Shown piece after piece: positions 10,230 to 63,146 of a DNA stretch of 64,000 bases. The stretch spans positions 124,001 to 188,000 of IMG/VR virus record IMGVR_UViG_3300035183_000733; one strand, given 5' to 3'. Made by a program: the position numbers and the translations under genes. The notes below the pieces were generated by a model. The model had not been told where the DNA came from and ran no database searches. It was given only the letters and a program-made list of their open reading frames with translations. Each line of letters opens with the position of its first letter. Within the stretch, counting starts at the first letter, position 1.

Positions 10230-10652
10230 TCAGAAGTTGACGGTTATCGTCTTCTTCTTGAAATCGATCTCAATGTCATTGGGGTACATGGAACCACCAA
10301 ACTCAAACTCGCTGGAAAGCACACCGTTCATTTCCCACTCTCCGTCGCCCTTGATGATGCTGAACTCAACCTCATTCTCGCCGTCCTTGTCGTCCGAAGG
10401 TGTGACTACTGTGTAATAGCCGCTGACCCTATGTATAACTGGGGCCATGCTGTTTATGCCAGACTTGCGGTTATCGAAGTTCATCTCCCACACGACGGTC
10501 AGGTCGTTTGCATCTATGTACTGATCCTTGGACTTGTCCACCACAGTGTCCTCACCGTAGTAGCTGACATCGCGGCGCTGCACCTCGGAAGTAAACCCGA
10601 AGTCATACATCTCCGCCTTCTCGTTAAGTTCGGTGAACCTCTTGATCCTCAT
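10230..10652 (-). CDS. putative internal head protein (CTS-like N-terminus)
   Basis: Starts [11 protein letters not shown]. Confidence 0.6.
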
Positions 10653-11074
10653 AACAAAAGTGTTTTTATTAAGTAAGTCACAAGTCCAACGCCAAACATG
10701 ATGGTCCTGTTTAATGGGGTCAACAACTTCTCAGTCTTGGCCGTGGAAGTCTTGCTATGATCGAACCACCCCTTGTCGTACACCCCGTCCAGGTGATGCC
10801 TCGTCACGTAGTAGGAACCGTCGTGCATGAACGGGAACATCAGTATCATGGAGGCCACGTAATACGCGGTCCATGGTAAGCTTTGCATCTGCGCGTAGAA
10901 CGCGACGGCAGCGATGAATGCCACCTGGGCACGCTGCGCCGTGAAGAACGCGTGCTCGTCAACTCCCTTGTGCGCGTCGCACTTTACTTTAGCTGAGAAA
11001 TAGTAAGCCTCGCGCACGCCCTCGAAGGCGGCGTAAGCTATCCACAGTGCGAGTATGCCGAGTATGCCGTACAT
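10649..11074 (-). CDS. membrane protein
   Basis: 141 aa with three hydrophobic segments. Confidence 0.65.
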
Positions 11075-11077
11075 GAA

Positions 11078-11530
11078 TTACTTCTTGTCCTTACCTTTGT
11101 CCTTGCTCTTGGAGGTCTTCTTTGCAGCAGGCTTCTTCTTAGGCTCCGCTTTCTTCTTAGGCTCCGCTTTCTTCTTAGGCTCCGCTTTCTTCTTAGGCTC
11201 CTCTGCCTTCGGCTCTTCCACAATGGGAGCTCCAGCCTTAGGCTCTTCCACCTTCTCTTCAACCACCGGAGCAACTGGCTCGACTATTACCTCGTCCTTG
11301 GGCTGCTCGGTCTCTACCGCAACCTCGGCGTGCATAGGAACTGGTGACACCGACGGGTCCAAAGTCAATGGGTACGCCATGGTCTCTTTCGGCTGGCAGT
11401 TGCTGTTGCTGTCACATCCGCAGTCCTTCTTATGGATCGGCTCCGAACCAGCAGGTACGCTTTTCGCGGCCTTGGCAATGATTACCGCCAGGATGACGAC
11501 AAATGCAATTACTGATACAATAACAAACAT
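11078..11530 (-). CDS. membrane-anchored Lys/Glu/Pro-rich protein
   Basis: N-terminal TM helix, low-complexity body, EPKKK(A) repeats. Confidence 0.65.
   Translation of the reverse strand: MFVIVSVIAFVVILAVIIAKAAKSVPAGSEPIHKKDCGCDSNSNCQPKETMAYPLTLDPSVSPVPMHAEVAVETEQPKDEVIVEPVAPVVEEKVEEPKAGAPIVEEPKAEEPKKKAEPKKKAEPKKKAEPKKKPAAKKTSKSKDKGKDKK
11133..11200. repeat. 18-bp tandem repeat x ~4 (encodes AEPKKK)
   Basis: ttcttcttaggctccgct repeated. Confidence 0.9.
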
Positions 11531-11542
11531 ATCAATTGTGGT

Positions 11543-11947
11543 TTAGTTTTCTTCGTCCTTTTCTTTCTCGTCCTCGGACTCTTCGGACTCTTCGGACTCA
11601 AAATCGTCTATAGATTTGAGCTTCTTCAACTCCTCATCGTCCGGATCGAGGTAGTCGTCAGTAGCCATGAAATTACCGTACTTGAGCGGTCCAGTATACC
11701 CGACGGTCTCGCCCGGGAAGTCCTGCGACATTCCCATGCCCGAGATCTCTCCCTGGTACCTGCTGAACGATGAGCTGTCCGCCTCGTCGACACCCTCGGC
11801 CTTCTCAATGTCCGGTTTCTTGTCGGCGTAGTCGTTCCACGTCCAGATAGACCTCTTGTAATTCTTACGTACGAGCTCGTATCCCTTGTCTCCGGGATAT
11901 GGCTTGATTGCAGACTTCGGTGGTTTGTATGATGATGTGTCGCTCAT
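11543..11947 (-). CDS. hypothetical acidic protein
   Basis: 134-aa ORF; CTS-like LKKLKSIDDFESE near the C-terminus. Confidence 0.6.
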   Translation of the reverse strand: MSDTSSYKPPKSAIKPYPGDKGYELVRKNYKRSIWTWNDYADKKPDIEKAEGVDEADSSSFSRYQGEISGMGMSQDFPGETVGYTGPLKYGNFMATDDYLDPDDEELKKLKSIDDFESEESEESEDEKEKDEEN

Positions 11948-12330
11948 TACTGTGCGAATACGCCGATGACATCCTTTATTTTTAGCGTGACCGGCTTCTT
12001 GTTGCGGTCCTGCGTCTTGATGTTGTCTCCCTCGATCTCCATTACGACGAACTCGCGCTGCCAGTACTTTGGGTTCTGGACGACTATGAGAACCGGTCGC
12101 TGCTTGCTCGGATCCTTCTCTTCCGCAGCCGCATCCATCTTCCCCTTAATGAATCCGGCAAGGTCCTTCTGGTCGACCATCTCCTTGTCATTCTGTGCAA
12201 CGTCTTTGAACACCGGCACGAGTCCCTCGTTTAGTTCTGGATCGGTGCCGCGCTCCTCGTCATTGGGTTCCCTCGGAGCCTCAGCATCCTTCTTCTCGAA
12301 GAGGTCGCTTATTTTCTTAATGTGCTTCAC
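11947..12330 (-). CDS. putative internal head protein (CTS-like N-terminus)
   Basis: Starts MKHIKKISDLFE. Confidence 0.6.
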   Translation of the reverse strand: MKHIKKISDLFEKKDAEAPREPNDEERGTDPELNEGLVPVFKDVAQNDKEMVDQKDLAGFIKGKMDAAAEEKDPSKQRPVLIVVQNPKYWQREFVVMEIEGDNIKTQDRNKKPVTLKIKDVIGVFAQ

Positions 12331-12686
12331 GAAAAGTAGACTTTCATTTTTGTGTCCGGCTCAACGGCCAGCTCCATATTCTCTATCGCGTACTTGTGGT
12401 TCGCATGCGATGCCGGCAATTCGAGATCTCTCCTTAATGTGCCAGCCGTGTTGGCTCCGGTATCGTTATCGAAGAACCTCCACCACAAACCTGCTTTTTT
12501 AGATCCGCCCTTTATTTTCCTCGCACGTCCGTCCAACGCATCGAGCTCGTCCATGAGCTCTACGAGGTCCCTGTTCTCGAGGTAATTCATGAATGCAGTC
12601 TTCAGGTCTGGCACCAGCGCTTGCAGCGCGGCGTCGAGGTTATCCTCGTTTACCGAAAAATCCTCAAATAGTTTTATATTCTTCAT
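12327..12686 (-). CDS. putative internal head protein (CTS-like N-terminus)
   Basis: Starts MKNIKLFEDFSVNE. Confidence 0.65.
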   Translation of the reverse strand: MKNIKLFEDFSVNEDNLDAALQALVPDLKTAFMNYLENRDLVELMDELDALDGRARKIKGGSKKAGLWWRFFDNDTGANTAGTLRRDLELPASHANHKYAIENMELAVEPDTKMKVYFS

Positions 12687-12688
12687 TT

Positions 12689-12860
12689 ATCAATTGTGGT
12701 TTAGTTTTCTTCGTCCTTTTCTTTCTCGTCCTCGGACTCTTCGGACTCAAAATCGTTTAGTTCTGGATCGGTGCCGCGCTCCTCGTCATTGGGTTCCCTC
12801 GGAGCCTCAGCATCCTTCTTCGTTTACCGAAAAATCCTCAAATAGTTTTATATTCTTCAT
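12689..12860. repeat. collapsed tandem duplicate of 11531-12686
   Basis: Three co-linear pieces matching 11531-11607 (one 9-bp repeat unit fewer), 12228-12293 and 12647-12686. Confidence 0.9.
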
Positions 12861-13387
12861 TTAACAATGTAGTTTAGTTTGCCGGCTTCTACCTCCTGCA
12901 TCTTCCAAGCGCCCTGGCCACCTGGCCACTTGTCGAGATGCGCAGTCATCTTAGACGTGTACTGAGTGTTCCTCAGGTTAGCCTGCATCTCGTCGTAGAA
13001 CTTGGTAACTTTCGGATTCTTCTGCAGGTAGTCCTCAACGCATTTGCAGAGCATCTCGAGTACTTTGTTGAGTTCACGCTCGTCGACCTCGATGTGGTTG
13101 TCGTTGGTCTCGAAATTTCCCTTGTCGATAACAGCCTGATCGATAGCATCGACCGGCAATTCCGTTATGGACAGCACTGAGTATTCGGCCTTGCCCTCAG
13201 ATGGTTGTGCGAACTTGCTGAACTTGCCGATGCTTATCACGAAACCGCGCTGAGTCTCCGCCCCTACCTTGAAGAAGTAGTTAGCCACGTCGCCGTTCTT
13301 GGCGTAGAAAAAAGGAAGATCGCCGTAGCCGTCCTCGTTTACGTAGTTCTCGTTTACGAACCTATCGAATGTGAATATCTTCCTCAT
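12857..13387 (-). CDS. putative internal head protein (CTS-like N-terminus)
   Basis: Starts MRKIFTFDRFVNENYVNE. Confidence 0.65.
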   Translation of the reverse strand: MRKIFTFDRFVNENYVNEDGYGDLPFFYAKNGDVANYFFKVGAETQRGFVISIGKFSKFAQPSEGKAEYSVLSITELPVDAIDQAVIDKGNFETNDNHIEVDERELNKVLEMLCKCVEDYLQKNPKVTKFYDEMQANLRNTQYTSKMTAHLDKWPGGQGAWKMQEVEAGKLNYIVK

Positions 13388-13713
13388 TAGTCCTCCATTT
13401 TGTATTTGATGTCCTTGATGTGCGGGAAGTACGCCTTGGCCTCTTCCGGCACCATCTTATTGCCGTAGTCCGCGATAGCGAATGCGTCCTGCCGCTCGTC
13501 ACGCTCATCGGCCACGCCCATGTAAGCGGTCCAGTAGTTCATCTTCGTGTTGTGCACGGCAACGATACCTACCGTCCCCCATTTACCGGCTCCGCGCCAC
13601 TCAACGCCAATGATTGTGCGCTCGTCATCGAGCTTCTTCCAAGCGTTGGCCTTCTCCGCTTCGAGCGCCTCATTGCGGGTCGTCTCGAACTCTCCGAATT
13701 TCTTAAGTCCCAT
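13387..13713 (-). CDS. putative internal head protein (CTS-like N-terminus)
   Basis: Starts MGLKKFGEFETTRNE. Confidence 0.6.
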   Translation of the reverse strand: MGLKKFGEFETTRNEALEAEKANAWKKLDDERTIIGVEWRGAGKWGTVGIVAVHNTKMNYWTAYMGVADERDERQDAFAIADYGNKMVPEEAKAYFPHIKDIKYKMED

Positions 13714-14112
13714 TACTTCTTAAGAGTTAGTTTTACGGACTCGTCCGCCTCATTGATGCGTTAAAATTGTTTATTTTGCTCATTGTAGTGGTAACTATTT
13801 CTTTTCTTATATATCATTCAGAAATTTCTGTTCTTCGGGTATTTCGTGAAGTTAAATGTCATGTCCGGGGACTGGTCGATGAGCCCCTGAGTTATATATA
13901 TCGATTTCGACCCACGGAAGTCCAGTCCAGTCCAGTCCTCGCTCGAAAAAGTGCTCTGCCCGCACAAACCATCTTCGGCGTGACAACGAGGTCGGGCCGT
14001 TGACCATGCACCAGGGTCTAATCTGTATCTGGGTAAAAAAATTAAAAACCGTTCCCTCTACGGAACGGTTATTGTAGAGAATGAATGTTATCTGCTTGGT
14101 ACTGTGCATCCA

Positions 14113-16041
14113 TTACTGATTGGCGGGTTCTTTGCTATTATGGATGTCGTTCCTAAGTATAGGATACAAGCCCTGCACCGTCTTTGGCACGTGCGTCTTG
14201 AACTCGCCGAACTTGTCCTCGTCCACGAGCTTGCGCACGTCGGTACCCGATATGATCCTCCGAGTCTCCATCACCTCGAACTTCTCGTCGAGGTCGAGCT
14301 CGTTGTTGCGCTTGAAGTTAAACTCGAGCTGCTTGCGGTAGTCGTTTATCCTGTCAGGACCCGCGCCCCACAGTATCGGCTCGAACTCCGGCCTCAGCGA
14401 ATCTATGATGTCCTGTATGAAGCCCCTGCCGACTATCCTGTAGCCGATCACGAGGTCGTTGGTGTCCTTGTGCAGGTTGCCAAGCATCGTCCTCAGTGTG
14501 GATATAGTGAACGGGCTGTTGCCCGACTTGTTGTGTCCCGGATGCACGGCGACTATTACGACGGGCAAGCCGTTGGCCTCGTTAAGTTCCTTCACCATCT
14601 CGGCGTGCCCGTTGTGGAACGGCTGGAACCTTCCGACTATTATGTTAACCCTCTTTCCCTTCTTCTTGGATTTCTTCTTGACGTCCTCCTCTTCTTTCGG
14701 CTCATCGGCGGACAAAAGGTCCATAGTGTTTTTGAGCCCGGTCATTTCAGGATCGGAATCATCCACAGAATCACCATCGGTGTCTGCGTCCTCGTCCTCA
14801 ACTTCGGGCCTGCCCCTCTGTGCTATGAACTCGCCGAACAATGGCACGTCGTTTTCGTTGAGGCTCTCCCTTAGGTTCTGTGATAGGTGGTTGTTTATCT
14901 TGTCTATGGTGCCATTGAACTGGCGGATAACCTCCTGGCTGAAGAAGTTGTTTGCCTTCTTCTTGTGCTTGCGCAGAGATGCCAGCATTATCTTGAACAG
15001 TTTCTTGTACGAGTCCGCCGAGTCTATGAGATCGAGCGCCTCCTGGTTCGGTATCATCTGCCTGTTGAGGTCGAACTCCTTTTTCTTCATGTAAGCCGGC
15101 TCGGAGAAGTTGATGTTCTTGTAGTCCTCCCCCCTTTCGGATATGAACTTTATGAATAGGTCGCAGATGAAGTTTATGTACCTGTCGTCGAAGTTACGCC
15201 CCTTCGGCTTGAACTTCTTTAGGTTTAGGTTCTCGACGTAGTTGGCTATGTCGATGAGCGTCATGTAATAGATGTCGTTCGGCGTGTCGTTCGTCTCGTT
15301 GACCCTGTTCTGCGCCATCTGCGAAAATATCGGGTCCACCATCTTGGCAAGCACCACGTCATCGTCGTCGCTGCCGAACCTAAACACTATTCCCTCTATT
15401 GGCTTCTCCAGATCCTTGTTCAGGACCGTGCTGCGCATCTTTGGGTTCAGAATGGATATTACGTACTTCACGAAGGACTCGGTCTTGAACTTCTTCTCGA
15501 GCTCGGCCTGCGGCGTGTCGAGGAAGTCGAGGATCTTTATCCTCTGGTCGTCGTTGAGAACGCCCTGGAATATTATCGGCGCGCGCTCCACCTGCAGGAT
15601 GTCTGCCCACTTATCGAGCTCTTCCTTGTCCTGGATTGTACGGACCATCTTGCCGGCCGAGTTTTTCACGTGAATGTACGACAGCACCAATCCGTTCTTC
15701 GGGAGCTTGTCATAAACAAGCTCCTGCGGATTTGAGTTGGCGAAGTACTCCATACCGAACCTCCATCCACTGGGTAGCTTGGCAAGCACCTTGTCGCCAA
15801 GGCTGTTGATATGCTCGATAGGTGCCTCGTAATAACGCACGAGGGTCCTGTCCACCTGGGAAATTGGGTTTGTAGTGTTGCGCTTGAAGAATTCGATCTT
15901 CTTGCTGATCGGATTCTTCTCTACACCAAAGGCGCTCGCGTCGAGCTTTTCGTTTATAGTGACATAACTGTCGAATAGTTTGTCCAGAAAATCTTTGCCC
16001 TTCTTTTTGTAGATTTCGTTTAAGTGTGCTATTCCCGCCAT
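14113..16041 (-). CDS. RNA-ligase-like nucleotidyltransferase fused to a HIGH-motif (cytidylyl/NMN adenylyltransferase-like) domain
   Basis: N-terminal EKLDAS, FGMEY, PIIFQG, EGIVFR, AKMVDP (ligase motifs I-V); C-terminal GRFQPFHNGH and ISGTDVR. Confidence 0.75.
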   Translation of the reverse strand: MAGIAHLNEIYKKKGKDFLDKLFDSYVTINEKLDASAFGVEKNPISKKIEFFKRNTTNPISQVDRTLVRYYEAPIEHINSLGDKVLAKLPSGWRFGMEYFANSNPQELVYDKLPKNGLVLSYIHVKNSAGKMVRTIQDKEELDKWADILQVERAPIIFQGVLNDDQRIKILDFLDTPQAELEKKFKTESFVKYVISILNPKMRSTVLNKDLEKPIEGIVFRFGSDDDDVVLAKMVDPIFSQMAQNRVNETNDTPNDIYYMTLIDIANYVENLNLKKFKPKGRNFDDRYINFICDLFIKFISERGEDYKNINFSEPAYMKKKEFDLNRQMIPNQEALDLIDSADSYKKLFKIMLASLRKHKKKANNFFSQEVIRQFNGTIDKINNHLSQNLRESLNENDVPLFGEFIAQRGRPEVEDEDADTDGDSVDDSDPEMTGLKNTMDLLSADEPKEEEDVKKKSKKKGKRVNIIVGRFQPFHNGHAEMVKELNEANGLPVVIVAVHPGHNKSGNSPFTISTLRTMLGNLHKDTNDLVIGYRIVGRGFIQDIIDSLRPEFEPILWGAGPDRINDYRKQLEFNFKRNNELDLDEKFEVMETRRIISGTDVRKLVDEDKFGEFKTHVPKTVQGLYPILRNDIHNSKEPANQ

Positions 16042-16054
16042 AACTTTCTGTTTA

Positions 16055-16522: not shown

Positions 16523-16599
16523 CTATTTTATACCCCACAACCCAATCTGTTTCATATACCCATATAAACCCCTTATGTGTTAGTTCTACGCTCAGTCTT

Positions 16600-16731
16600 T
16601 GGGATTAGCTCGAATGCAAAATTATCTTCGCCATATTTGTTCCAAGCCCTCTGTATGCACATTTTTATGAACATTACCCAATTAAAAATCACCTGTGTTT
16701 TTTATTTACTATGCGATATATGCCAGGTATA
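16600..16731 (-). pseudogene. degenerate GIY-YIG homing endonuclease
   Basis: Fragments PGIYRIVNKNTGDF* and, in a shifted frame, QRAWNKYGEDNFAFELI. Confidence 0.75.
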
Positions 16732-17625
16732 TTATTTTTCAAGTTCGGCCGGGATTTCCAACTTAACCCGTTTTAAAAATTTAATACAATTCCGTTTGAT
16801 TTCGTCCAATTTATCATGGAACATATAATCGGGTTTATTTATATATTCGAACACCTGCTCGAATGTTTCTGCATCTTTGGGCCGTATTCCAGGACCCAGC
16901 ACGAACTCCAGAAAGTCCTTTGGAGACCTGGTTATCAGCTCCTCGTGCTCCGGTTGTATGACCGGATTCTTGAGCAGTTTCTTCTTACCAACGTACGATT
17001 TCCTTATCTTGCTGAGACCGTCGTTGAGCCTCATCATGTAGCCGGAGAACCCGAGCAAGTTGCCGTGCTCGTCGCGTTCCTCCTCTCCCGTTAGCACCGA
17101 CAGGATGGCGGCGAACAGCCAGTTCCTGTGCGCGCTCTTGTACTTGCTCTCGCCCTTCTTGTAGTTGGGGGAATGGTATATGAACTTCGCCCACTCCATA
17201 TTCTTCAGCGGGAGGAAGTCCACCTGTACGTAACCGAGGTTGGGATCACCCTTGATAGGGTACGACATCGACACGACCTCGAGGCCGCGCATCCACTTTA
17301 TCTGGAACTCGGGGAACTTGCGCTTTAGCAAGTCGTACACCTGCTTTAGGCCCTGCGTCTCTACGACGCCCTGCTTCTCACAGAACTCCTTCATGGGTAT
17401 GCCCACGTCGAGGTCACCAGATACGTCCTCGTCGGACTCCTTCTTGCCGGCAGAGCCTATGAGCAGTGCGTCGGTGCCCCAGCTCGAAATACCGAGTGCC
17501 GGGAACACGTTGTCTTGTATCGAGTCAAGCGTAGCCTGCACCTCGCTCTGCTTGATGCTGCGGGTGTTGTCAAGCGCGTTGCCGCCCTCGAAAAGAAAGT
17601 CGTTGAATGTGTGGATATGCTTCAC
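16732..17625 (-). CDS. pol-beta-superfamily nucleotidyltransferase with CTS-like N-terminus
   Basis: MKHIHTFNDFLFE-GGNA; IGSAGKK..SGDLD; VQVDF third Asp. Confidence 0.7.
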   Translation of the reverse strand: MKHIHTFNDFLFEGGNALDNTRSIKQSEVQATLDSIQDNVFPALGISSWGTDALLIGSAGKKESDEDVSGDLDVGIPMKEFCEKQGVVETQGLKQVYDLLKRKFPEFQIKWMRGLEVVSMSYPIKGDPNLGYVQVDFLPLKNMEWAKFIYHSPNYKKGESKYKSAHRNWLFAAILSVLTGEEERDEHGNLLGFSGYMMRLNDGLSKIRKSYVGKKKLLKNPVIQPEHEELITRSPKDFLEFVLGPGIRPKDAETFEQVFEYINKPDYMFHDKLDEIKRNCIKFLKRVKLEIPAELEK

Positions 17626-17654
17626 GATTTATATATCCACAAAAACGGTGATAA

Positions 17655-17775: not shown

Positions 17776-17783
17776 AATCTCTC

Positions 17784-18725
17784 CTATTTTTGTTTAACAA
17801 CAAAGAGGCAGCTGTTCGCACCGTCGGAAATTTCCGGGATCACGTACCCATCCTCACCGTCAACAAATATGGACGAAATATCGGCACTCGGCGCATCGTT
17901 GGCGCCAGAATAGTGGTCAACAGACATGCCCTTGGTGTTGTTTGACATCTTGTCCATGGACACCCAAACCACCTCGGAATCATTGGTTAAGTCGTACTTC
18001 TCGAACCAGTTAGAAACCTCCTGTTCGGAGAACAGTCCCAGCTCGTCCACGAAATACTTTACGAACTCCTTCATGGTCCAACGCTTGTCCCAGTGGTTGT
18101 AGTATATCTTGGACTTGTTCTCGTTGATTTTAGTATTGCGAGGATCGAACACAACGTATACAGTGTAAGTTCCCTTCCCGTAATAATTCGTGGTGCACTT
18201 CTTTAGGATTATCCCGTCGTATCCGCGCTTCTCTAACGAAGCTCTGTACTTATCGGCACCGCCAGCATCCTTTATTTCGTCAAAATATATCTGCACCGAG
18301 TCCATATCGTTATCGGCATCGTAGTCCTTGTGTTTGTCATCGATGACGTAAGGCTTATCTATACTGATGGTCACGTTCATAACACGTCCCTTGCCGCTCT
18401 TGGACACGTATTTGCCCTTGTCGGCATCGAAGTGCGTTAGACCTGCGAAGAACTCGGCCATTGTATCGTTATCGGTGAAGAACACGCCCATGCCATTATC
18501 GGGGGAGTCTGTGCCGTACATCCCGTTGGCCTCATCATGACTGACCTGGAACTTATCGAATTTAGGAGACTTTGTACCGTGCAGCACATTGTAAGTGGAT
18601 TCGAACACGAACTGCTCGAACATCTTTATGCGGCGCGGCTCCTTGCCACACGTGTGCGGTATGGCTATCCTGGTTTTTACCCCGTGCTCCTGCATAGAGC
18701 ATGCCTTGCAATAACGTTTTTTCAT
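17784..18725 (-). CDS. ADP-ribosyltransferase-like (ART-PolyVal-type) domain protein
   Basis: LHGT..KFDKF, GMGVFFTD...AEFFA, GYDGII, VVFDP; internal IKMFEQFVFE CTS-like peptide. Confidence 0.6.
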   Translation of the reverse strand: MKKRYCKACSMQEHGVKTRIAIPHTCGKEPRRIKMFEQFVFESTYNVLHGTKSPKFDKFQVSHDEANGMYGTDSPDNGMGVFFTDNDTMAEFFAGLTHFDADKGKYVSKSGKGRVMNVTISIDKPYVIDDKHKDYDADNDMDSVQIYFDEIKDAGGADKYRASLEKRGYDGIILKKCTTNYYGKGTYTVYVVFDPRNTKINENKSKIYYNHWDKRWTMKEFVKYFVDELGLFSEQEVSNWFEKYDLTNDSEVVWVSMDKMSNNTKGMSVDHYSGANDAPSADISSIFVDGEDGYVIPEISDGANSCLFVVKQK

Positions 18726-18757
18726 ATCTTATATATACGCCCCCGAGGTTACCAAAC

Positions 18758-18787
18758 AAGGAGGCCCGACGTTAATCGGGCCTCCTT
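18758..18787 (-). terminator. intrinsic terminator after uvsW
   Basis: aaggaggcccga/tcgggcctcctt hairpin. Confidence 0.75.
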
Positions 18788-20343
18788 TATCTGCGAAGAT
18801 CTATATTGAATTCCTTGTACGGGAACTTCTCCTTCTCGTATATCTTGATGCGTTCGTACATGTGGTTGAGCAAGTAGTTGGGCTTGCCGCCGTGACTGAA
18901 GTCGTCCACGAAGTCCACCACTATCGCCGTCTCCTTATCCGCGTGCAGCCTCATCATACGGCCTATCGATTGTTTGATGATGTTCTCGCTCTTGTACGAC
19001 TCGACAAGGAAGATGTTGTGCAGGTTCTTTATGGATATACCTGTCGAGAAAGTACCGAAGCTTGCTATGAGAATCCTGTTCTCACCCGCTTCCATCCTCT
19101 TCTTGTACTCGTCCCTCAGGCTGTTGTCGGTGTCGCCGTCGACGTAGTACACCTCCTTCTTCGGGTCCTTCTCCCTGATGAGGTCGTATATCGCGCGGCC
19201 GTACCCCTCCTCCACACTCTGGAACAGGACGATGGAGTTCTTGGTGGTCCTTAGTATAAAGTCCACCACAAAGTTCAGCCTCTCCCTCGATCGTATCACG
19301 AGCTTCTTCTCGAGGTTGAATATGTCGGAGCCCTCGAGGTCGGTCCTCGTCTGCTTCAACCTGGCGAGCTGCGCTCTGGTCTCGTCGTTGAGGTAGTTCA
19401 TCCTTACTATGCGGATGTCCACCGGAGTCGCGTACTTGTTCTGGAACAAGAAGTCCGCTGACACCTCGTTAACCATAGGTCCGAGACAAACCTGCGATGT
19501 AAAGAAGTCTGCCGAATCCCTACCTGCCGCCGTGAGCGTGCCGGACAGACCGAACCTGTACCTGCCGCCGCCTCCGTTCGCTATCTTGCCGATTATCTCC
19601 TTTATCGACTTGGCCGGCGTCTGGTGCGCCTCGTCCACGAACGCGCAATCGAAAGAGCCGAGCATCTCCCGCTCGAACTTTACGAGCGTCTGCCAAGTGC
19701 CAATGACCACGTTGGCCTCCGAGCGTATTTCCTTCGCGCCGTCGCCGACCTGCTGGAACTTCATACCCACCCTGTACGCTCCGTACTCCTGGAAGTCCTC
19801 TATTCCCTGCACCACGAGGTTCAGTGTCGGTACTATCATTATGAAACGCTTGATGCGCTTTGTGTGAAGCATGAACGCGATAGCCATGAAGGTTATCAGC
19901 GTCTTGCCGGCCGACGTGGCGAGCTCCTGGCTCGTGCGCCTGAACTTGCAGATCAAGAACGCCGCCTTTATCTGGTAGTCGCGCGGTTTCTTGTTCGGGT
20001 CTCCGCCAATACCATCCTTAAAGAACTCGTTCACCCAAGCGGTGAACTCCTCCATTGTGAGGCCGTCGTCGATGGTGTCTCTCAAACCGTCGATGGTGAC
20101 GCCGAGACCGTACTGCTTCGATACGTTGAGCAACTCGGCCCACAGGCCTATTGGCAGGAACCTCTTCTTCTTGAAGAACTCTATGTTACCGTCCCAGGAC
20201 TTGTTCTTGCTGTACTTCTTCCTGAAGAAATGGTTAGCGACCTTCTTGGTGAAGGAGATCTCAATTTGGCGTAGGTCGAGCTCGTCGTCGTATTCGACGA
20301 GCCTCAACCACTCACCATTGTCCATTACCTCGAAGTGCATCAT
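18787..20343 (-). CDS. uvsW: UvsW-like SF2 DNA helicase
   Basis: PRDYQ, LATSAGKT, IVPTLNLVVQ, FVDEAH, RFGLSGT, GTFSTGISIKNLHNI, QSIGR.MR. Confidence 0.9.
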   Translation of the reverse strand: MMHFEVMDNGEWLRLVEYDDELDLRQIEISFTKKVANHFFRKKYSKNKSWDGNIEFFKKKRFLPIGLWAELLNVSKQYGLGVTIDGLRDTIDDGLTMEEFTAWVNEFFKDGIGGDPNKKPRDYQIKAAFLICKFRRTSQELATSAGKTLITFMAIAFMLHTKRIKRFIMIVPTLNLVVQGIEDFQEYGAYRVGMKFQQVGDGAKEIRSEANVVIGTWQTLVKFEREMLGSFDCAFVDEAHQTPAKSIKEIIGKIANGGGGRYRFGLSGTLTAAGRDSADFFTSQVCLGPMVNEVSADFLFQNKYATPVDIRIVRMNYLNDETRAQLARLKQTRTDLEGSDIFNLEKKLVIRSRERLNFVVDFILRTTKNSIVLFQSVEEGYGRAIYDLIREKDPKKEVYYVDGDTDNSLRDEYKKRMEAGENRILIASFGTFSTGISIKNLHNIFLVESYKSENIIKQSIGRMMRLHADKETAIVVDFVDDFSHGGKPNYLLNHMYERIKIYEKEKFPYKEFNIDLRR

Positions 20344-22845: not shown

Positions 22846-23811
22846 TTACAGGTTGTTGTAGAGGTCGTCGAGGCTCGATACAGAACCACTGCCTTTTGTC
22901 TCCGCCTTAGAAGCGGCCTTCGCGCCGGTACCGCCCATCAGGTCGTCGAAGCTGGTCGATGGCCTGGCTGCCGGAGTCTCCGATGCCGTGCCGTCCGATG
23001 CAGGGGTCTTGGTTCCGGCCTTGCCTGCGCCACCGAGGATCTGCTCCACGAGCCTTCCGTCAGGTATGATGTTGCGAATGGCGTTCAGGACTTTCTCGTA
23101 CTGCTCCTCGGTCCACTCCTTGTAGTCGTACTTCTCGAGCTCTGGCGAGTTAGCCTTGAGCCACTCCACCACGCGAGCCATGTCCTCCTTTGTCCTCTGG
23201 ATAGGCTTGCCTTCCAGGACGAGCGGGGTCTTGTCACCCACGAACTCGCAGAGGTCGTAGTTGTTCCACTTCTGCTTCTTCACGATGTGAAGCGCGAAAA
23301 GCTTGCCGTTGAAGAGGTCGTACGGGTTGATTGGCTCGCCGAACTCCGATGGCTTAAGAAGCGCCTCGATTTTCTGGTTGATCTTGATGCCGAATTTGAA
23401 CACCATGATTTTGCCCTCGAGCTCAGGCTGGTTCGGATCTTTGATGATCTGAACGAGGCTGAAGAAGTTGTCGTTCCTCGAGAACTTCTCTGCCAGCTCC
23501 TGGTCGCGTACTGATGTGCTCTTCTTGAGCTTCCAGAACGTGTCCGCGAGTATCGACTTCTTGCCCACTGTAGCGGGATCGTCGACACCGAAGCTCTCCC
23601 CCGAGATAGGGTCTTCGAGCCAGTAGTAGCTCTTCTTGATTTTAGACTTCTCGCTGTTCCTCACGTTAGGGAGGAAGCGGATAAGCGCTTTGTAGATGCC
23701 GTCGCGTCCTTTGTCGGCGGATGGCGCATAGATCTCTCCGGCCTTACCGGTCTTCTGCGGAGTAATTAGATTCTCCGATGAGAGGTTGAAAATGTCGAAC
23801 TCGTTGCTCAT
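22846..23811 (-). CDS. T4 gp32-like single-stranded DNA-binding protein
   Basis: ALIRFLP, YQIIKDP.QPELEGKIMVFKFG.KI-type core, WNNYD.CEF, acidic SLDDLYNNL tail; start set at ATG 23811. Confidence 0.85.
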   Translation of the reverse strand: MSNEFDIFNLSSENLITPQKTGKAGEIYAPSADKGRDGIYKALIRFLPNVRNSEKSKIKKSYYWLEDPISGESFGVDDPATVGKKSILADTFWKLKKSTSVRDQELAEKFSRNDNFFSLVQIIKDPNQPELEGKIMVFKFGIKINQKIEALLKPSEFGEPINPYDLFNGKLFALHIVKKQKWNNYDLCEFVGDKTPLVLEGKPIQRTKEDMARVVEWLKANSPELEKYDYKEWTEEQYEKVLNAIRNIIPDGRLVEQILGGAGKAGTKTPASDGTASETPAARPSTSFDDLMGGTGAKAASKAETKGSGSVSSLDDLYNNL

Positions 23812-25878: not shown

Positions 25879-26235
25879 ATGAGCATAGTGACGAAATTCG
25901 AATTGTTTGAGTCCGAAAGCGTTCCGTTGTACGACCTATGGACAATATACATGGGGATCGTAGACGGGATAAATGACATCATATCCGAAGAGGGCGAGCT
26001 CAGCGATGCGTACTGGAAGGAGAACGTGGAGAAGGACCTTGACGAGATAACCAGCTACGTGAAGATGAAGCACCAGGTGGACGAGAAGAAAGCAGAGATT
26101 CTAAAGAACCTGGAGGAACTACTGGACGGGCTCGAGGGTGCGATAGGATTCGGCAGCGTAAGCGAGGATAGGTACTTCAAGAAAGGCGTCATAAACAAGG
26201 CGAAGAAGTTTCTAAATAAATACAAGGACAGATGA
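25879..26235 (+). CDS. putative internal head protein inside the inverted segment
   Basis: Starts MSIVTKFELFESE. Confidence 0.6.
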   Translation: MSIVTKFELFESESVPLYDLWTIYMGIVDGINDIISEEGELSDAYWKENVEKDLDEITSYVKMKHQVDEKKAEILKNLEELLDGLEGAIGFGSVSEDRYFKKGVINKAKKFLNKYKDR

Positions 26236-26518
26236 AAAAATAATGCTATTCGAGCAGTTCCTCAACGAGGGAAAACGCAACAAGTTCTATCTCTTGAACT
26301 CAGGCGAGAAGATCGACACGTCGAATCCGATGTCGAACGGCCTCGTGTCCGGCCGGGAAGGATCCGGCAAGGAGGAGGACAAGATGACCTACCTGTTCGT
26401 CAAGACGTACAAGTACAAGAACCCGATCGTCATCGCCGGCAGCGACAAACCGGAAGGCTACGGCGTGGACACGGAAGGCGAGAAGTCAAATATCGCGCTG
26501 CTCGACGACATAAACCGC
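26232..26518 (+). pseudogene. 5' part of a CTS-bearing gene split by the inversion
   Basis: ATG AAAAAA TAATG is one A short of MKKIMLFEQFLNE; the 3' part lies at 25736-25837 on minus. Confidence 0.6.
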
Positions 26519-26732
26519 ACTACGTCCCACAAAGCGCACAGCACATCCTCGGTGATACTTTCTGGTCCACGTCCTTGTGCGTGCAGTACTCGCGTTCGAG
26601 CTCCACGAACTTGCAGTTGGCGCAGTTCGTACCCTTTATGCCTTACGGCAATGTTATCAGGTCTGCAGCCTTTGCGCGTTCGAGTTTCTCGGCCGCCGTG
26701 CCGTGTTCGTTTATCTCTCTTATGTACTTCAT
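26519..26732 (-). pseudogene. Cys-rich CTS-bearing gene with internal TAA, broken by the inversion
   Basis: MKYIREINE...LITLP*GIKGTNCANCKFV..YCTHKDV..RMCC; TAA at 26643-26645. Confidence 0.55.
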
Positions 26733-27298
26733 TTCTTCTCCGTCCAAGCTTTGCTTATTGCTGCGCCGAGCGCGGTTGACACGAGCCTGCTTGTGAACAT
26801 GTCATAGAGAATGCCCTTCTCTATACCGAGCGCCTTTGCTATGATACGGCCAATCATCGGTCCGGCAAGGAATCCTGCCGCGCCTCCGACCAATTTGCCG
26901 AAGAATCCCTCGTCGAGGTTGCGTATGTCGCCGTCGTACTCGTTCTCGAAAACGACCATCATTTCGTCGAGCTGCTGGTTCTCCTCCTCGGTGAGGTAGG
27001 ATATGCCATTGCTCTTGCTCGCCACATGGTCCTTGTACAATGGTACCGCCTCGTTCTCGTTTGCGGCCTCCGCCCTTTTTATTCTCGCCTTGATGGCGTT
27101 CTGTATCATCTTGAATTCCGGCTCGTCGTTGCCCAGTGTCCATGTCAGTGCATTGTCCGCGTTCCTTGCCGGGTATATCGTGAACGTTTCTGTATTTAGG
27201 ATGTCCTTTAGCGTGTTTGCGATTCCGGCTTCTCGTGCCTGTTTGCCCTCGTTGAGTTCACCCTGCTTCTTGCTCCTGTATTCGTTGAATAACTCCAT
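26729..27298 (-). CDS. putative head/ejection protein with C-terminal glycine-zipper hydrophobic hairpin
   Basis: MELFNE..LNE; LDE-GFFGKLVGGAAGFLAGPMIG...LVSTALGAAI. Confidence 0.6.
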   Translation of the reverse strand: MELFNEYRSKKQGELNEGKQAREAGIANTLKDILNTETFTIYPARNADNALTWTLGNDEPEFKMIQNAIKARIKRAEAANENEAVPLYKDHVASKSNGISYLTEEENQQLDEMMVVFENEYDGDIRNLDEGFFGKLVGGAAGFLAGPMIGRIIAKALGIEKGILYDMFTSRLVSTALGAAISKAWTEKK

Positions 27299-27300: not shown

Positions 27301-27572
27301 TTATTTGTGTTTCTTTGCGTCTTTGTCGAACCTCGAGTGCTACTTCTTCATCTTCTTCAGCGCGTCGAGCTTTACCGTCTTTACAAACTTGCCCTTGTCG
27401 TATATGCTGTACGTGCCGAGCGTCTTGCCCGGCTTGTACGTGTCGACGATATTGTTCATTATAGGGTCACTTTGTAAATTATAGAGTTATCCTCGAACAT
27501 ACCATGCACCTCCTCTATCTTGGAGCGGCTCGCCTCGTTCAGTTTGCTGAATTCTTTAAAATTGTGGATCAT
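27301..27572 (-). pseudogene. CTS-bearing gene with -1 homopolymer frameshift and internal TAG
   Basis: MIHNFKEFSKLNE..KVT; one extra base in the G3 run at 27464-27466 continues PIMNNIVDTYKPG..KKMKK*(27340-27342)HSRFDKDAKKHK. Confidence 0.45.
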
Positions 27573-27590: not shown

Positions 27591-28394
27591 TTATATATCA
27601 TCGTCCTCTACGGGATTCTTGAAGTTAACGGTGCCTGATTGCAGGCGCGCGAGCAATTTCGACACAGCAAGGTTCTTGTCCATTCCGGCCTTCTTTGCTG
27701 AGGCCTTTGGCTGGGGCATGAATCTTCTGTTGGGTGAGCCGGCGAGCTTCTTCCCTGTTATTTCTACCAGGTTCTCTGCCATGTCCCGGAGCCCCGTTAC
27801 TTTCAGCACGGATTGCGGCACGTTCTTCTCGATCCACCCGATTGCGGTTTTTTCGTCCACGTCGAACGCATCCTTGCCGGGTCCCGGGTCTTTCGTCTTT
27901 ACCTCGCCGAATTCGACAGCTATCGCCATCTGGACCGCCTTCAGTATGTCTATTGGGCCGAGCCCGGGTATGTTGAGGTTGTACGCCTGTATCTTGGCGT
28001 TGGGGGCTATCATGTACGCAGTCGTCCACCTGTGGTGGCCGTCTATGATGTACTTGCCGTTGGCTATTATTATAGGGTTGTCCATTGACAGTACTTTGTT
28101 TGCGGCTATGTCCCTGGCGAATTCGGGCATCTTCTCGAGCGAGTCGTCCAGCGATAGTTCCGATTGCGTCGGTGTGAGCGAGCTAATAGTTACAGCTATT
28201 TCATCGGCAGATACCACCTCGTCGTGCTTGAGCCCGTCGAGCTTGCCTGCCGCCATTACGGATAGGACCCTCGGATTGCTGACCGCGTCTTTCAGTTCCT
28301 TTACGAATTTTTCGTAAGGCAGCGACATGAGCTTCTTTATCTCGTCTCCGGCCAGGCTCTCGTTCAGCTGATTAAATTTCTTGAGGTGCCTCAT
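27591..28394 (-). CDS. ParB/Srx-like domain protein with CTS-like N-terminus
   Basis: MRHLKKFNQLNE; LTPTQ...PIIIANGKYIIDGHHRW. Confidence 0.7.
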   Translation of the reverse strand: MRHLKKFNQLNESLAGDEIKKLMSLPYEKFVKELKDAVSNPRVLSVMAAGKLDGLKHDEVVSADEIAVTISSLTPTQSELSLDDSLEKMPEFARDIAANKVLSMDNPIIIANGKYIIDGHHRWTTAYMIAPNAKIQAYNLNIPGLGPIDILKAVQMAIAVEFGEVKTKDPGPGKDAFDVDEKTAIGWIEKNVPQSVLKVTGLRDMAENLVEITGKKLAGSPNRRFMPQPKASAKKAGMDKNLAVSKLLARLQSGTVNFKNPVEDDDI

Positions 28395-41067: not shown

Positions 41068-41108
41068 CTATGTTTTATTCTCATTTATCTTCCTTATATA
41101 TCCCTGAC

Positions 41109-50037: not shown

Positions 50038-50116
50038 TATTTTTCCTATTTGAAAATTTTCTGCCCAATCTGGGCTTCACTTATATATATTACAAGTAAA
50101 AACAAGCCCCATTTTA

Positions 50117-57197: not shown

Positions 57198-57218
57198 GTT
57201 TGGTTTGATTGATGGAAG

Positions 57219-57250
57219 AGACCCTGGCGAAAGCTGGGGCTTTTTCTTTT
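57219..57250 (+). terminator. intrinsic terminator
   Basis: ccctggc-gaaa-gctgggg followed by a T run. Confidence 0.7.
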
Positions 57251-57527
57251 ATCCAACCAGGGTGTTCGTGAAGGTGTCATCGAACTTGCTCTTCCAGGCC
57301 GTTTGCGCCGCCTCTGACGAGAAGAGAATCCCGTGCCTTGAGTACGCCAGGGCCTGTCCGCCTTTGACCACCACGACGCACGGTATCGGGTACATGTTCC
57401 TGTACCCGGTGGTGGCTTTGAACCCGGAGTCTATCCCGTCCATGTACACCTCGTATCCTTTTATGCTTCCCTTGTGCGTCCCCTCTGGCATGTTGGGCAG
57501 GTCGTAGTATGGCTTTATGTTTCTCAT
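57249..57527 (-). CDS. hypothetical protein
   Basis: 92-aa ORF abutting phoH. Confidence 0.6.
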   Translation of the reverse strand: MRNIKPYYDLPNMPEGTHKGSIKGYEVYMDGIDSGFKATTGYRNMYPIPCVVVVKGGQALAYSRHGILFSSEAAQTAWKSKFDDTFTNTLVG

Positions 57528-58310: not shown

Positions 58311-58331
58311 TATGTTTAAGTTGGTTATGCT

Positions 58332-58961
58332 TTATATATCGTCGCGTCCCTTGAGATGCTTCAGCTTCTTCTCTACCTTTTTTATCTTTATTATCTCAGG
58401 GTTGTACACCACAAGGTGGTACACCTGCGGCAGCTTATGCAGATATGCGTCGTATCCTATGGCCGTCATCGATTTTCCGAATTCCTTCGAGTCTCTGCCA
58501 TACAGGTCGTTGTACAGCCCGAGCGCCGCGTCGAGCATGTTGTCGTTGTCCATGGCGGCCTCTACTGCCATCTCCTTCGCCATATCGATGTCCTGCGCGT
58601 AATTCTGCAGGTTCATCTCGAGCTCCTCTTTGTCCGGATACAGGTCTATGAACTTCCTGAGCTTAGCCTCGTCCGGTTTAGTCTTCTTGTCGAGCACGCG
58701 TTCCGGATCGAGCTCCATGGTTGCGGTGTATATCCAGCCTGGGTCCGATCCGTAGCTTCCCTCTGCATAACCAGACGCCTGCCACTTGAGCCTGCTCCAG
58801 TATATGCCGGGTCCCATCGCGTTCCTGTCGCGGGAATAGTCTTCGGCGTCGAGGTAACGGCCGACGAAGGTGTCAAGCTTCTGCCTGTCCCCGTGATACC
58901 ACAATCCGTCTATGAGTTTCTTGCTTATCATTTGTTGTCGAGAAATCTTTTTTACATGCAC
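58332..58961 (-). CDS. ADP-ribosyltransferase-like (ART-PolyVal-type) domain protein
   Basis: WYHG..KLDTF, GPGIYWS...ASGYA, GYDA, VVYNP; true start uncertain. Confidence 0.55.
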   Translation of the reverse strand: MHVKKISRQQMISKKLIDGLWYHGDRQKLDTFVGRYLDAEDYSRDRNAMGPGIYWSRLKWQASGYAEGSYGSDPGWIYTATMELDPERVLDKKTKPDEAKLRKFIDLYPDKEELEMNLQNYAQDIDMAKEMAVEAAMDNDNMLDAALGLYNDLYGRDSKEFGKSMTAIGYDAYLHKLPQVYHLVVYNPEIIKIKKVEKKLKHLKGRDDI

Positions 58962-59247
58962 TTATTGTCCGTGTAATCCGTGTAATCCATATTTGCTTCT
59001 TAAGTAAGGAGTCGTTGCAGTCGAGATAATCCGTGTAGAGCACGTGATACACGACTGGTATTCTTACGACCTTCTTCCTGAACGGACCGTTTATAGATGC
59101 GCCCGAAGCCTCGTTCTCGAGGAACCTATCGACCTCCTTGTTGACCTTGTTTTTCTGAACCGCCGTTATTTTTGAACCGCATGGATCTTGCGCGAAAAGC
59201 GACAGTGACATCATAATCGCAGCGAATAGTGATAACAGCTTCTTCAT
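58952..59247 (-). pseudogene. internally deleted M43 (pappalysin-like) secreted metalloprotease
   Basis: Signal ..SLFA-Q, RIPVVYHVLY, then out-of-frame MDYTDYTDNKCM* Met-turn fragment; no HExxH remains. Confidence 0.65.
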
Positions 59248-59260
59248 AACTGTTTAGTTT

Positions 59261-62200: not shown

Positions 62201-62269
62201 CTCCTCGTTGAAGGAGAAGTTCAGGTTATTGCCGGTCTTATCGTAAAATTTCAGGTGCTTATATGACAT
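59261..62269 (-). CDS. baseplate wedge-like protein
   Basis: 1002 aa; GAYKGLINIVRFFGY-type segment and C-terminal PKD-like repeat. Confidence 0.6.
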   Translation of the reverse strand: MSYKHLKFYDKTGNNLNFSFNEETGYWEGNMYFSKVSIGLYENEHIFILENVIYGSPGADTLTFPVLGQQTSPTQEVWRARWETNDAEANIFQFQVTEEDGVPYITRYETIDYGNPAVAYTEISPDEQKIVVSINSEPLKINLGFTSPDEDIYDRTLIIEDMSFPTPRIVAKIALQGETVGEDDRLRLMLENFGRKLTHSDAIMLRDYDIKEALPDYQMLNEKRKEMFVAGEDIFPYMGAYKGLINIVRFFGYQDMRIKEYWLNVDESSENYGKVLQMQIDQLFNETNKPLLKHPLIPSKTYRKTGNFGLFYDITVETGEVDQFGIPGTQNAFMFSNEEVLLKLFALKEKLKREYVPLNARIVDIVGEGIYFERYGTRSWTDELKVIPQKVGADIEFEADPQVGYIRDIRRFMTTRFSPGLDLPVDNYDNLVNPYSTGQHYPPYAVPGLLESITEFYDELKKFPWPYRDEKDKYIEDEPGVVAGCPVILKGKISQFTWDDLDIAWDDTDVNTFTWDTIDFSMFYEIEWIIEKFGDRPYYFSIRGRIQDYYNLPHFLPYTGKYRVTMNMYDMFNAKSVEIKNEYIEVLARELQIAAFARWRNFPVYQWDSTTDTWDDLAGSTWEFPIEGISLYNSPVHEQLINWKRYRNQEDAQILSPYTGNYADLNVVIAESEEKDNPARRFGTTYALRWMNMDVSWDELYHSTWDMMDYHGDFLGGFKIYNPQIGDQIRIDDYPWFTFVDQSPSIAPLDLFEAVAQLQASTNPGLMKFDFHVFEGPASPPYIKASAKASGADGWHFVDYMQASSPGGIVGDPYSWTYPTWLVQQNDLTNLLATYPSIDPNMLFLDTPLQDLISNASSSYAYWQAKGFVKTEPLGPEYPTPWAQHRGHLPSWAGSQSFSNNDLRVFKDDFEVPLGVPVFFIHNHSEIPGKDNTRWVIINEATGETVIDVKHENLIFNFIEESTYSIECWVDDTHGNPAHVLRKGYVKASGYKTFGKTPLDLK

Positions 62270-62285
62270 GTATTATAATCCTTGC

Positions 62286-63146
62286 TTAATTATACCACTT
62301 TATGTTCGGTAGTTCCATTATTTCCTTGCCCATTTCTGACAGCATCTTGCCCATGGAACTGTAAGTGAGCGCACGCCAGTGTAAAGGTGTCTTGCCCGTC
62401 TTAGAGTTCAGCACGATTTTCAACCGTTCGCCGGATAGATTCTTCTCACTCATTCCGAGCGCTTTGAGCATATTCGGCTTGCTACTGAACCCGACCTTTT
62501 GTGGCTTGATCTTACCGTCTTGTATTGTCAGCCTATAATAATCATCGCCAAGCAGAACCATGTTGGCATCCTGTGCATCGGTATTGTCTGCTTTTTTCCT
62601 ACCGTATGATAATACTCTCTGTATCGGTATCGCGTAGAGCCTGGTCGTCCCATCCGGTTGTTTCTCCCCGGTCATTAGTATCATGCTCCCGAGTCCGGCC
62701 TTCGTAAAATTCTCGTTGACATTCTCGTTCATTATCTCTGCATCATCTTGATCGAACACTGCAACCATGTTACCGTCGCGTACCGTGTGACCGTCGAACT
62801 TCTGTAAACGTTCTTTGATGAACAGCGCGTCGTATCCCTGTGATATTAGCTTGGCCTTCCAATTTTTGAAAAACTCGGTATCCTTGGTGTGCTCCATTCG
62901 TATTGCGTCCCACTCGTCCATAGTTATAACTTTCGGATTCTCGTAAGTCAGCTTGCATTTCATGATGTTCTCTCCGAACATCTTGGCAAGCTCTGCATCA
63001 TCAGCAAACCAAATACCGAAAGCCGATGGGCCGCTCTTAGTTTTTGACATATCAAACTTGTCAAACTTACTGTCGGTACCATGATACCAAACAGAACCAT
63101 CGGTATTCTCGGACTCAAATAAGCTATAAGTTTTTATGTGCTTCAT
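62286..63146 (-). CDS. CTS-bearing ADP-ribosyltransferase-like domain plus a second domain
   Basis: Start reset to ATG 63146 (ATGA coupling): MKHIKTYSLFE; WYHGT..FDKF, FGIWFADD..AKMF, GYDA, VAVFD; NENVNE linker. Confidence 0.6.
   Translation of the reverse strand: MKHIKTYSLFESENTDGSVWYHGTDSKFDKFDMSKTKSGPSAFGIWFADDAELAKMFGENIMKCKLTYENPKVITMDEWDAIRMEHTKDTEFFKNWKAKLISQGYDALFIKERLQKFDGHTVRDGNMVAVFDQDDAEIMNENVNENFTKAGLGSMILMTGEKQPDGTTRLYAIPIQRVLSYGRKKADNTDAQDANMVLLGDDYYRLTIQDGKIKPQKVGFSSKPNMLKALGMSEKNLSGERLKIVLNSKTGKTPLHWRALTYSSMGKMLSEMGKEIMELPNIKWYN

Follow-up and report, generated by a model that had tools for sequence, protein, structure and literature searches.

The window analysed here is a 64,000-nt stretch of IMG/VR record IMGVR_UViG_3300035183_000733, comprising bases 124001–188000 of a 373,759-bp phage record of 50% GC that CheckV rates as complete. 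Scattered along it are genes whose products begin with the same short N-terminal peptide, here called the tag, with the pattern M-[KR]-x-[ILV]-K-x-[FY]-x-x-[FL], then zero to four residues and a glutamate. The tag is present on at least 41 of the 456 proteins predicted by our own simple gene call, which is the basis of all genome-wide counts, and it resembles the capsid targeting sequence (CTS) of phage T4. Judging by its head and tail genes the phage is T4-like, with a gp23-type major capsid protein (PF07068, E 7e-43) and a gene set that also includes portal, tail sheath, baseplate wedge protein and tail fibres. Coordinates below are those of the window, with the strand given as + or −, unless the genome is named.

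The tagged genes at the left of the window lie on the minus strand. A 140-aa gene (10230–10652, −), with an 11-residue tag followed by K, and a 127-aa gene with a GTG start (11947–12330, −; (M)KHIKKISDLFE then K) are both without known domains. In the 119-aa gene that follows (12327–12686, −; MKNIKLFEDFSVNE then D), the tag DNA lies in a 52-nt direct repeat (12643–12694), and the second copy (12817–12868; 96% identical, 174 nt apart) covers an orphan tag (12807–12860, −) that again begins MKNIKLFEDFSVNE and stops after 17 codons. Two related strains, from wastewater and mine-drainage assemblies, lack exactly the 174 nt between the repeat copies, and therefore the tag served as a duplication or deletion site. 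Next are a 176-aa gene without known domain (12857–13387, −; MRKIFTFDRFVNE then N) and a 108-aa gene (13387–13713, −; MGLKKFGEFETTRNE then A) with late-promoter-like motifs, described below, at 13807–13814 and 13892–13899. A broken tag gene beginning MSKINNFNA (13733–13783, −) stops after 16 codons in a region, 13737–14014, that is a hot spot of indels between strains, one of which is interrupted here by 777 and 804 other letters. Indels that change the frame set the strains apart within the broken gene as well, with 7 nt inserted at 13758 and 3 nt deleted at 13785. These strain indels, together with the orphan tags, indicate rapid gain and loss of tagged genes.

Farther along is a 297-aa gene with a GTG start (16732–17625, −; (M)KHIHTFNDFLFE then GG), where only 3 nt separate a late motif from the start codon. 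It is followed by a gene for an ADP-ribosyltransferase (ART) of the ART-PolyVal family (17784–18725, −; E 1.6e-12), whose tag, RRIKMFEQFVFE, is preceded by a 31-residue extension and which has a late motif just upstream of its ATG at 18725. Translation of this open reading frame (ORF) might begin instead at the Met within the tag. The extension itself (18633–18725, −) has a CxxC..HxC spacing, possibly a small zinc-binding element. On the plus strand we identified a 118-aa gene without known domain (25879–26235, +; MSIVTKFELFE then S) and a 178-aa gene with a short-form tag (26243–26779, +; MLFEQFLNE then G). An ATG at 26232 is followed by a stop after three codons (ATG AAA AAA TAA, in an A-run), with the open frame beginning at 26243; the break at 26232–26245 (+) may be real or may be a homopolymer assembly error. 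Back on the minus strand are a weak short-form tag on a 189-aa protein (26729–27298, −; MELFNE then Y) and two truncated tag genes, one stopping after 29 codons (26643–26732, −; MKYIREINE then H) and one after 37 (27459–27572, −; MIHNFKEFSKLNE then A; late motif at 27591–27598). An 85-aa open frame in the closest relative starts similarly to the first of these (..RAKAADL[I/V]TL). A 267-aa tagged protein (27591–28394, −; MRHLKKFNQLNE then S) has a ParB-like nuclease match (E 2e-4) below the Pfam cut-off. At the right end are a second tagged ART-PolyVal protein of 286 aa (62286–63146, −; MKHIKTYSLFE then S), with the sequences IMNE and NVNE at residues 137–145 just past the ART domain, and the 3' part of a 364-aa UPF0227 hydrolase-like gene (63143–64000, −; MRHLINFRLFE then A). 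The latter starts 237 nt beyond the window and heads an array of more tagged genes to the right.

The original prediction, made on this window, had listed 15 N-termini with a T4 CTS-like peptide, and all of them are found where it placed them. Those at 13783, 26732 and 27572 belong to genes truncated after 16–37 codons, and the orphan tag at 12860 had been overlooked. Its count of about 15 is right for the window and too small for the genome, where the full-length tagged genes, at least 41, are joined by approximately ten orphan tags when short frames are counted; the tag is both genome-wide and clade-wide. A tag was called at 12 bits or more on a 10-column matrix applied to predicted N-termini. 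This score was reached by 41 of 456 N-termini, compared with 0.84 per genome for shuffled N-termini and 3 of 2425 internal Met positions, and a six-frame scan of the genome gave 37 matches against none in the reversed sequence. With a matrix built from other IMG/VR contigs only, 37 N-termini of this phage scored at least 8 bits, as opposed to 0.6 for shuffles, so the result is not circular. A motif scan of the genome and of related phages, proposed with the prediction in the form of an HMM and run here with a matrix, found the tag strongly over-represented at N-termini and recurring across the clade. The claim that replication proteins lack the motif was borne out, a helicase and the gp32-like single-strand-binding protein being untagged, and it extends to the large structural proteins, which are likewise without a tag.

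The tag can be divided in two: a core, M-[KR]-x-[ILV]-K-x-[FY]-x-x-[FL], takes up its first ten residues, and the second part is a hydrophobic-x-Glu site ending at residues 9–16 in 34 of the 41 tags. The narrower form hydrophobic-[N/F]-E occurs at residues 9–16 in 27 of 41 tags versus 11 of 403 untagged N-termini. Tags from other contigs (n = 213) give the consensus MKHIKLFE[EQ]F[ILV][NS]E, with A, S, K or G as the usual next residue. A corresponding site is present in the capsid protein, where ..CHYHSLNE followed by SAG.. at residues 36–46 is invariant in this phage and all 22 aligned relatives; HSLNE/S at residues 39–44 is near the alignment-based start of mature T4 gp23, and more distant relatives have other hydrophobic-x-E sequences at that place (ELYE, KLYE, AITE, KLNE).

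The genome also encodes a gp21-type (S77) prohead protease (PF03420, E 3.4e-11, above the cut-off; phrog_207, E 1.5e-40), in keeping with the premise of gp21-type processing on which the prediction was founded. The gene lies outside the window at genome positions 111219–113207 (−; locus L089:11219-13207) and its product is 662 aa long. A clade profile of the protease matches the T4 gp21 structure 5JBL (E 0.003), and its invariant His and Ser fall in blocks aligned to T4 gp21. Pfam places the S77 domain in the N-terminal part of the protein; beyond it are eleven tandem 14-residue repeats (YSEYLAENLDKNIS), each containing LAE, and the whole looks like a protease fused to a putative scaffold that would be cut into pieces. 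Across the clade the protease N-termini carry LNE, INE or LQE near residue 9, similar to the LIE-9 at the N-terminus of T4 gp21, an enzyme that cleaves after L/I-X-E (PMC9026906). As capsid propeptide, protease N-terminus and repeats all contain hydrophobic-x-E, the end of the tag matches the motif wherever a T4-type head protease is expected to cut. A co-fold that paired the protease domain, as a 28-row alignment, with the N-terminal 30 residues encoded at 28394, run without controls, scored 0.00 and counts neither way.

The T4 CTS is the textbook portable packaging tag, known on few proteins. Its sequence is MKTYQEFIAE (PMC8442874), with targeting determined mainly by residues 4 and 7 and processing by residues 8 and 10 (PMC9026906). 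Aligned to the tag matrix without gaps it scores −11.7 bits, and this direct alignment fails. With one 3-residue gap of our choosing (MKT---YQEFIAE) it scores 17.2 bits, a value reached by 0.04% of its shuffles and by none of 419 untagged N-termini, and the four functionally mapped T4 residues then fall on tag positions F7, F10, [ILV]11 and E13. Because we chose the gap, this fit is a strong resemblance and not proof of homology. The claim of a T4 CTS-like peptide is supported by the gapped fit, the Glu motif and the presence of the S77 protease, and the central idea as a whole, such a tag with a Glu cleavage site on modular cargo, agrees with every feature that computation could address.

An octamer, ATATATAA, that resembles the T4 late promoter and may function as one is present in 69 copies genome-wide, mostly as GATATATAA[A/G]. 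It is found a short distance before the genes for protease, portal, sheath, baseplate wedge and tail fibres, and examples in the window are at 17629–17636, 18729–18736, 27591–27598, 41094–41101 and 50081–50088 (all −). At the operon level it was found at 23 of 41 tagged genes and at 83 of 415 others (odds ratio 5.1, p = 2e-6). The octamer often ends only 3–26 nt before the start codon, and some late mRNAs may therefore be leaderless or nearly so.

What follows the tag differs from gene to gene. All-against-all BLASTP of the cargo found only the ART paralogs and one other pair to be related, which confirms, with those exceptions, the earlier claim that the downstream sequences are unrelated. 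By match to the family model PF18760 (cut-off 31.2 bits), the ORFs at 17784 (48.8 bits) and 62286 (41.8 bits) and two outside the window (g232 and g402; the pair score 71.3 and 62.6 bits) are predicted ART-PolyVal enzymes. Of the three cargo domains previously proposed, ART is confirmed; ParB is found in the 28394 gene below the Pfam cut-off (21.8 versus 23.6 bits); and the nucleotidyltransferase at 17625 is a lead only, drawn from language-model neighbours without a Pfam match. Elsewhere in the genome tagged proteins include a UPF0227 hydrolase (g225), a 2H phosphoesterase at the Pfam cut-off with Acb1 just below it (g228), a SprT-like metalloprotease (g246), a NUDIX hydrolase (g32), a type IB topoisomerase (g437), a GNAT protein with a weak ART-PolyVal match below the cut-off (g6), a protein with weak AAA ATPase matches below the cut-offs (g123) and, with a weaker tag, an ATP-grasp enzyme (g295). 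Pfam gave no match at E ≤0.01 for 20 of the 40 tagged proteins scanned, and most of the small ones had no match in Pfam or PHROGs. A tagged 416-aa protein outside the window (locus L084:4330-5580, +) has, besides its N-terminal tag, a tag-like segment at residue 143 (MNHLRKYNDF..) ahead of a GNAT domain and a weak ART-PolyVal match, and may be a fusion of two tagged genes. It had also been suggested that internal sites make some of these proteins polyproteins. Tagged proteins show no excess of internal hydrophobic-[N/F]-E sites (1.5 per 1000 residues versus 2.5 in the comparison set), so this idea is unsupported as a general rule; only the 62286 ORF has an internal site pair at a domain boundary, the end of its ART domain.

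Type IB topoisomerase offers a view of one cargo across lineages. In all of the 25 closest ortholog clusters (52–91% identity) the tag immediately precedes WWKKYTKY, where the conserved domain begins. Orthologs at 44–56% identity have another N-terminal peptide, ..ERIKxLLExVxxEA.., that also ends in hydrophobic-x-E and might represent a further dialect of the tag, used by a different phage lineage, and still more distant orthologs have neither. Read from these alignments, the tag is modular, varying with lineage while the topoisomerase cargo is retained. No obvious recurrent tag was seen in 21 kb around one distant ortholog.

Among relatives, the capsid-gene neighbourhoods of 80 related contigs, 1.24 Mb in total, contained 84 tagged frames against none in the reversed control. 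A few of the 84 are internal Met positions of the capsid protein itself; with these and one conserved family set aside, the cargo of the frames has no homologs among the proteins of this phage. A strict DNA pattern for MKxIKxFExF in IMG/VR returned at least 233 tagged frames in 726 kb among the matches listed, compared with one in the control. The closest relative, a 482-kb IMG/VR contig, has 29 tagged genes within 20 kb at one place and 23 in a second stretch (loci L232 and L233), mostly of about 100 aa with MKHIKLFExFLNE, an arrangement far denser than in the genome studied here. In LR756500.1, one of the nearest named relatives, the dialect is MKYI[KL]EYEEF[IL]xE. Over 42 kb around the capsid gene the tag matrix gave one match in LR756500.1, none in Lak-B5 and one in Tenacibaculum phage pT24, the matches being marginal; a loose DNA pattern gave 28 versus 8, a clear enrichment, in LR756500.1 and 9 versus 2, a weak one, in each of Lak-B5 and pT24. 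In a set of ten tag-bearing contigs, a gp23-type capsid gene was above the Pfam cut-off in five and a weak partial match in a sixth.

We consider it probable that the tag is a T4-type capsid-targeting propeptide, in a longer dialect, borne by dozens of modular cargo genes whose products are packaged in the head and probably injected. Tagged proteins would be made late in infection alongside head and tail proteins, and the amphipathic N-terminal segment (M-K-x-I-K-x-F-x-x-F) would bind the scaffolding core of the assembling prohead. The S77 protease would then cut after the Glu that ends the tag, with the propeptide of the capsid protein, the scaffold repeats and the N-terminus of the protease itself as its other substrates, leaving the freed cargo in the head with the DNA. 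At the next infection the cargo would probably be ejected into the cell to act before any phage gene is expressed. Candidates for such cargo are the ADP-ribosyltransferases, the ParB-like, 2H/Acb1-like, SprT-like, NUDIX and topoisomerase IB domains, and many small ORFans. It is likely, though less certain than the identity of the tag, that these proteins are injected as effectors. Families including ART, GNAT, ParB-like, 2H and metallopeptidases have been assigned to effectors injected with phage DNA (Iyer et al., PMC5512222, PMC7824862), and the packaged T4 enzyme Alt is itself an ADP-ribosyltransferase (PMC9026906).

Several observations weigh against this interpretation. Scaffold binding, cleavage, presence in virions and ejection are all deduced from sequence, and the T4 CTS alignment depends on the chosen gap. 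At least 41 packaged protein species, approximately 9% of the genes, is far above the handful in T4 and would be unprecedented. Seven of the 41 tags are without hydrophobic-x-E inside residues 9–18, and 18 of the 41 tagged genes are without an exact late motif at the operon level. The cargo is acidic overall (−3.4 net charges per 100 aa, versus −0.4 for other proteins) whereas T4 internal proteins are basic, and the AAA ATPase, ATP-grasp, NUDIX and topoisomerase cargo could equally work inside the infected cell. Finally, several tag-bearing contigs have no detectable gp23 or S77 gene; in the set of ten, no gp23-type gene was found in three large contigs and one 20-kb fragment.

The strongest alternative, which we regard as unlikely, is that the tag does target proteins to the prohead and its protease, but that they serve head assembly, as scaffold, inner-body or size-determining proteins or as enzymes that cleavage switches on or destroys, without being delivered as effectors. 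In T4, gp21 cleaves the core proteins gp67, gp68 and IPIII, all of which function in assembly (PMC9026906), the cut-site motif is shared with the capsid protein and the protease, and acidic cargo is nearer to scaffold proteins than to the basic internal proteins of T4. An assembly role is, however, not obvious for catalytic domains typical of injected effectors (ART, 2H/Acb1-like, ParB-like, SprT-like, topoisomerase IB and NUDIX). The cargo is also almost wholly different between relatives and even between strains, which fits an arms race and not conserved assembly.

We find it improbable that the tag directs proteins to some other late structure, such as a membrane, the replication compartment or another protein shell, or that it is a degradation signal unrelated to the capsid. 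Tagged proteins are mostly soluble, with a membrane-like stretch in 3 of 41, and the tag both fits the T4 CTS at its functionally mapped residues and ends in the motif found at the capsid propeptide boundary. These points stand against the many targeting roles of amphipathic N-terminal helices, the possibility that some cargo (topoisomerase IB, NUDIX, AAA ATPase, ATP-grasp) acts in the cytoplasm, and the few tag-bearing contigs with no detectable gp23 or S77 gene. The three IMG/VR records of loci L143, L144 and L110 (501 kb; 348 kb, with inverted terminal repeats and 24% GC; and 219 kb) have tag-like frames, one a family of nine paralogs, and in them neither a gp23-type capsid protein nor an S77 protease was detected. 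The tag may reach beyond recognisable T4-like phages, or the capsid and protease genes may be too divergent to find.

A nucleotide-level origin, with the peptide as by-product of an AT-rich start region for ribosome loading or of a recombination cassette, is very doubtful. Start codons in this phage are preceded by A-rich sequence without Shine-Dalgarno sites, several late motifs end 3–5 nt from the start codon, and the 52-nt repeat, where related strains show a 174-nt difference, consists of two tag copies. Conservation is nevertheless in the amino acids: synonymous codons vary freely between tags, third codon positions are no poorer in GC in tags (0.60) than in untagged N-termini (0.555), tags use the G/C-ending codons that the genome prefers, and one amino-acid pattern persists across contigs of 21% to 50% GC. 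Recombination at tags accounts for turnover and not for conservation. The same codon evidence led us to reject a reading of the tag as a translation ramp. It is hardly credible that the tagged genes are diverged paralogs of one ancestor keeping only the N-terminus, without portable function: many are small and lie in tandem arrays and a few are recognisable paralogs, but they include unrelated families that reach the Pfam cut-offs (ART, GNAT, topoisomerase IB, NUDIX, SprT-like, 2H and UPF0227 hydrolase, with ParB-like just below), and topoisomerase IB orthologs have clade-specific N-terminal peptides on a conserved domain.

If the tag is indeed a capsid-targeting propeptide, its nearest counterpart is the T4 system of IPI, IPII, IPIII and the packaged Alt, in which a short N-terminal propeptide is likewise common to otherwise unrelated proteins. 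Both peptides place hydrophobic or aromatic residues three apart before [ILV]-x-Glu, both occur with a gp21-family protease and a gp23-type capsid protein, and in both ADP-ribosyltransferases are among the cargo and cargo genes occupy variable loci. The tag described here, from a phage known from sequence alone, is about 3 residues longer (MKHIKL-FEQFINE versus MKT-YQEFIAE) and more degenerate, and it marks at least 41 genes per genome, and far more in the closest relative, rather than a handful. Unlike the small basic internal proteins of T4, its cargo is largely enzymatic and net acidic, and the protease is fused to a scaffold-like repeat region.

Phages phiKZ and SPN3US belong to a separate lineage in which propeptides are diverse and the cut motif is different, and to our knowledge their ejection proteins have no common N-terminal tag. 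They are comparable in that many head-internal proteins are cut after Glu by a prohead protease and ejected into the host; for SPN3US, two reports give some 50 or more proteins in the head and an ejection-protein mass above 40 MDa (PMC7411985, PMC10052503). Polyvalent proteins join effector domains predicted to act early after injection, 2 to 15 of them in one giant polypeptide (Iyer et al. 2017, PMC5512222). They share ART, GNAT, ParB-like and 2H phosphoesterase domains with the tagged cargo, and their metallopeptidases are of a different clade from the SprT-like one here (PMC5512222). The tagged proteins do not have this architecture, with a median of 151 aa, mostly one domain, and GNAT and ART combined in one protein only. 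Each cargo is instead a separate gene with its own tag, and packaging would therefore be set by the tag and not by fusion. In phage P1, loading of the Dar proteins follows a hierarchy of partner proteins and is not known to use a shared cleavable N-terminal peptide. DarA, DarB, DdrB and Hdf are otherwise similar to the cargo proposed here, being anti-defence proteins loaded during head assembly and injected with the DNA (PMC5512222, PMC12810830).

We more tentatively propose, at slightly under even chances, that a clade of uncultured huge phages uses a packaging code readable in sequence, with tens to perhaps more than 100 CTS-dialect genes per genome delivering a ready-made proteome of enzymes and inhibitors, among them ADP-ribosyltransferases, topoisomerase IB, NUDIX, a 2H/Acb1-like phosphodiesterase, proteases and numerous small ORFans, and that the arrays serve as libraries of effectors that evolve quickly and are reshuffled through recombination at the tag. 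Differences between strains at tagged loci suggest that these genes stand at the front of the phage–host arms race. If the tag works as in T4, approximately a tenth of a huge phage's genes encode virion-borne proteins, which bears on the many genes of unknown function in such phages, and the packaged proteome of uncultured phages would be predictable from sequence alone. The tag would also list candidate injected anti-defence and takeover proteins, flag small ORFans as candidate inhibitors, and supply new dialects for loading foreign proteins into capsids. No prior description of the tag was found in the literature searched (tag strings; capsid targeting with huge phages), coverage of which was incomplete.

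The nearest named relatives of the phage are all uncultured: LR756500.1, with 45% capsid protein identity, and the Lak megaphages, with 40%; Tenacibaculum phages are more distant. Capsid proteins of this phage and two other tagged contigs have their best matches in LR756500.1 (45–51%) and Lak phages (38–41%). A megablast of INPHARED with 20 kb of the phage gave no match, and an identity with Jug phages was rejected on GC content (27–30% for Jug versus 50% here). IMG/VR holds many closer relatives, including the 482-kb genome with 77% capsid protein identity. A 313-kb IMG/VR record (locus L103; loci L225–L227) has gp23-family matches in three short, far-apart frames, as if its capsid gene were split or duplicated in pieces. 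Within the window, where no tRNA genes were found, the untagged neighbours include the gp32-like single-strand-binding protein (22846–23811, −), a superfamily 2 helicase (18787–20343, −) and a protein with a cytidylyltransferase-like C-terminal part (14113–16041, −). The source habitat of the phage is most likely a microbial mat metagenome, and strains 93–95% identical to it are present in wastewater, soil and mine-drainage assemblies.

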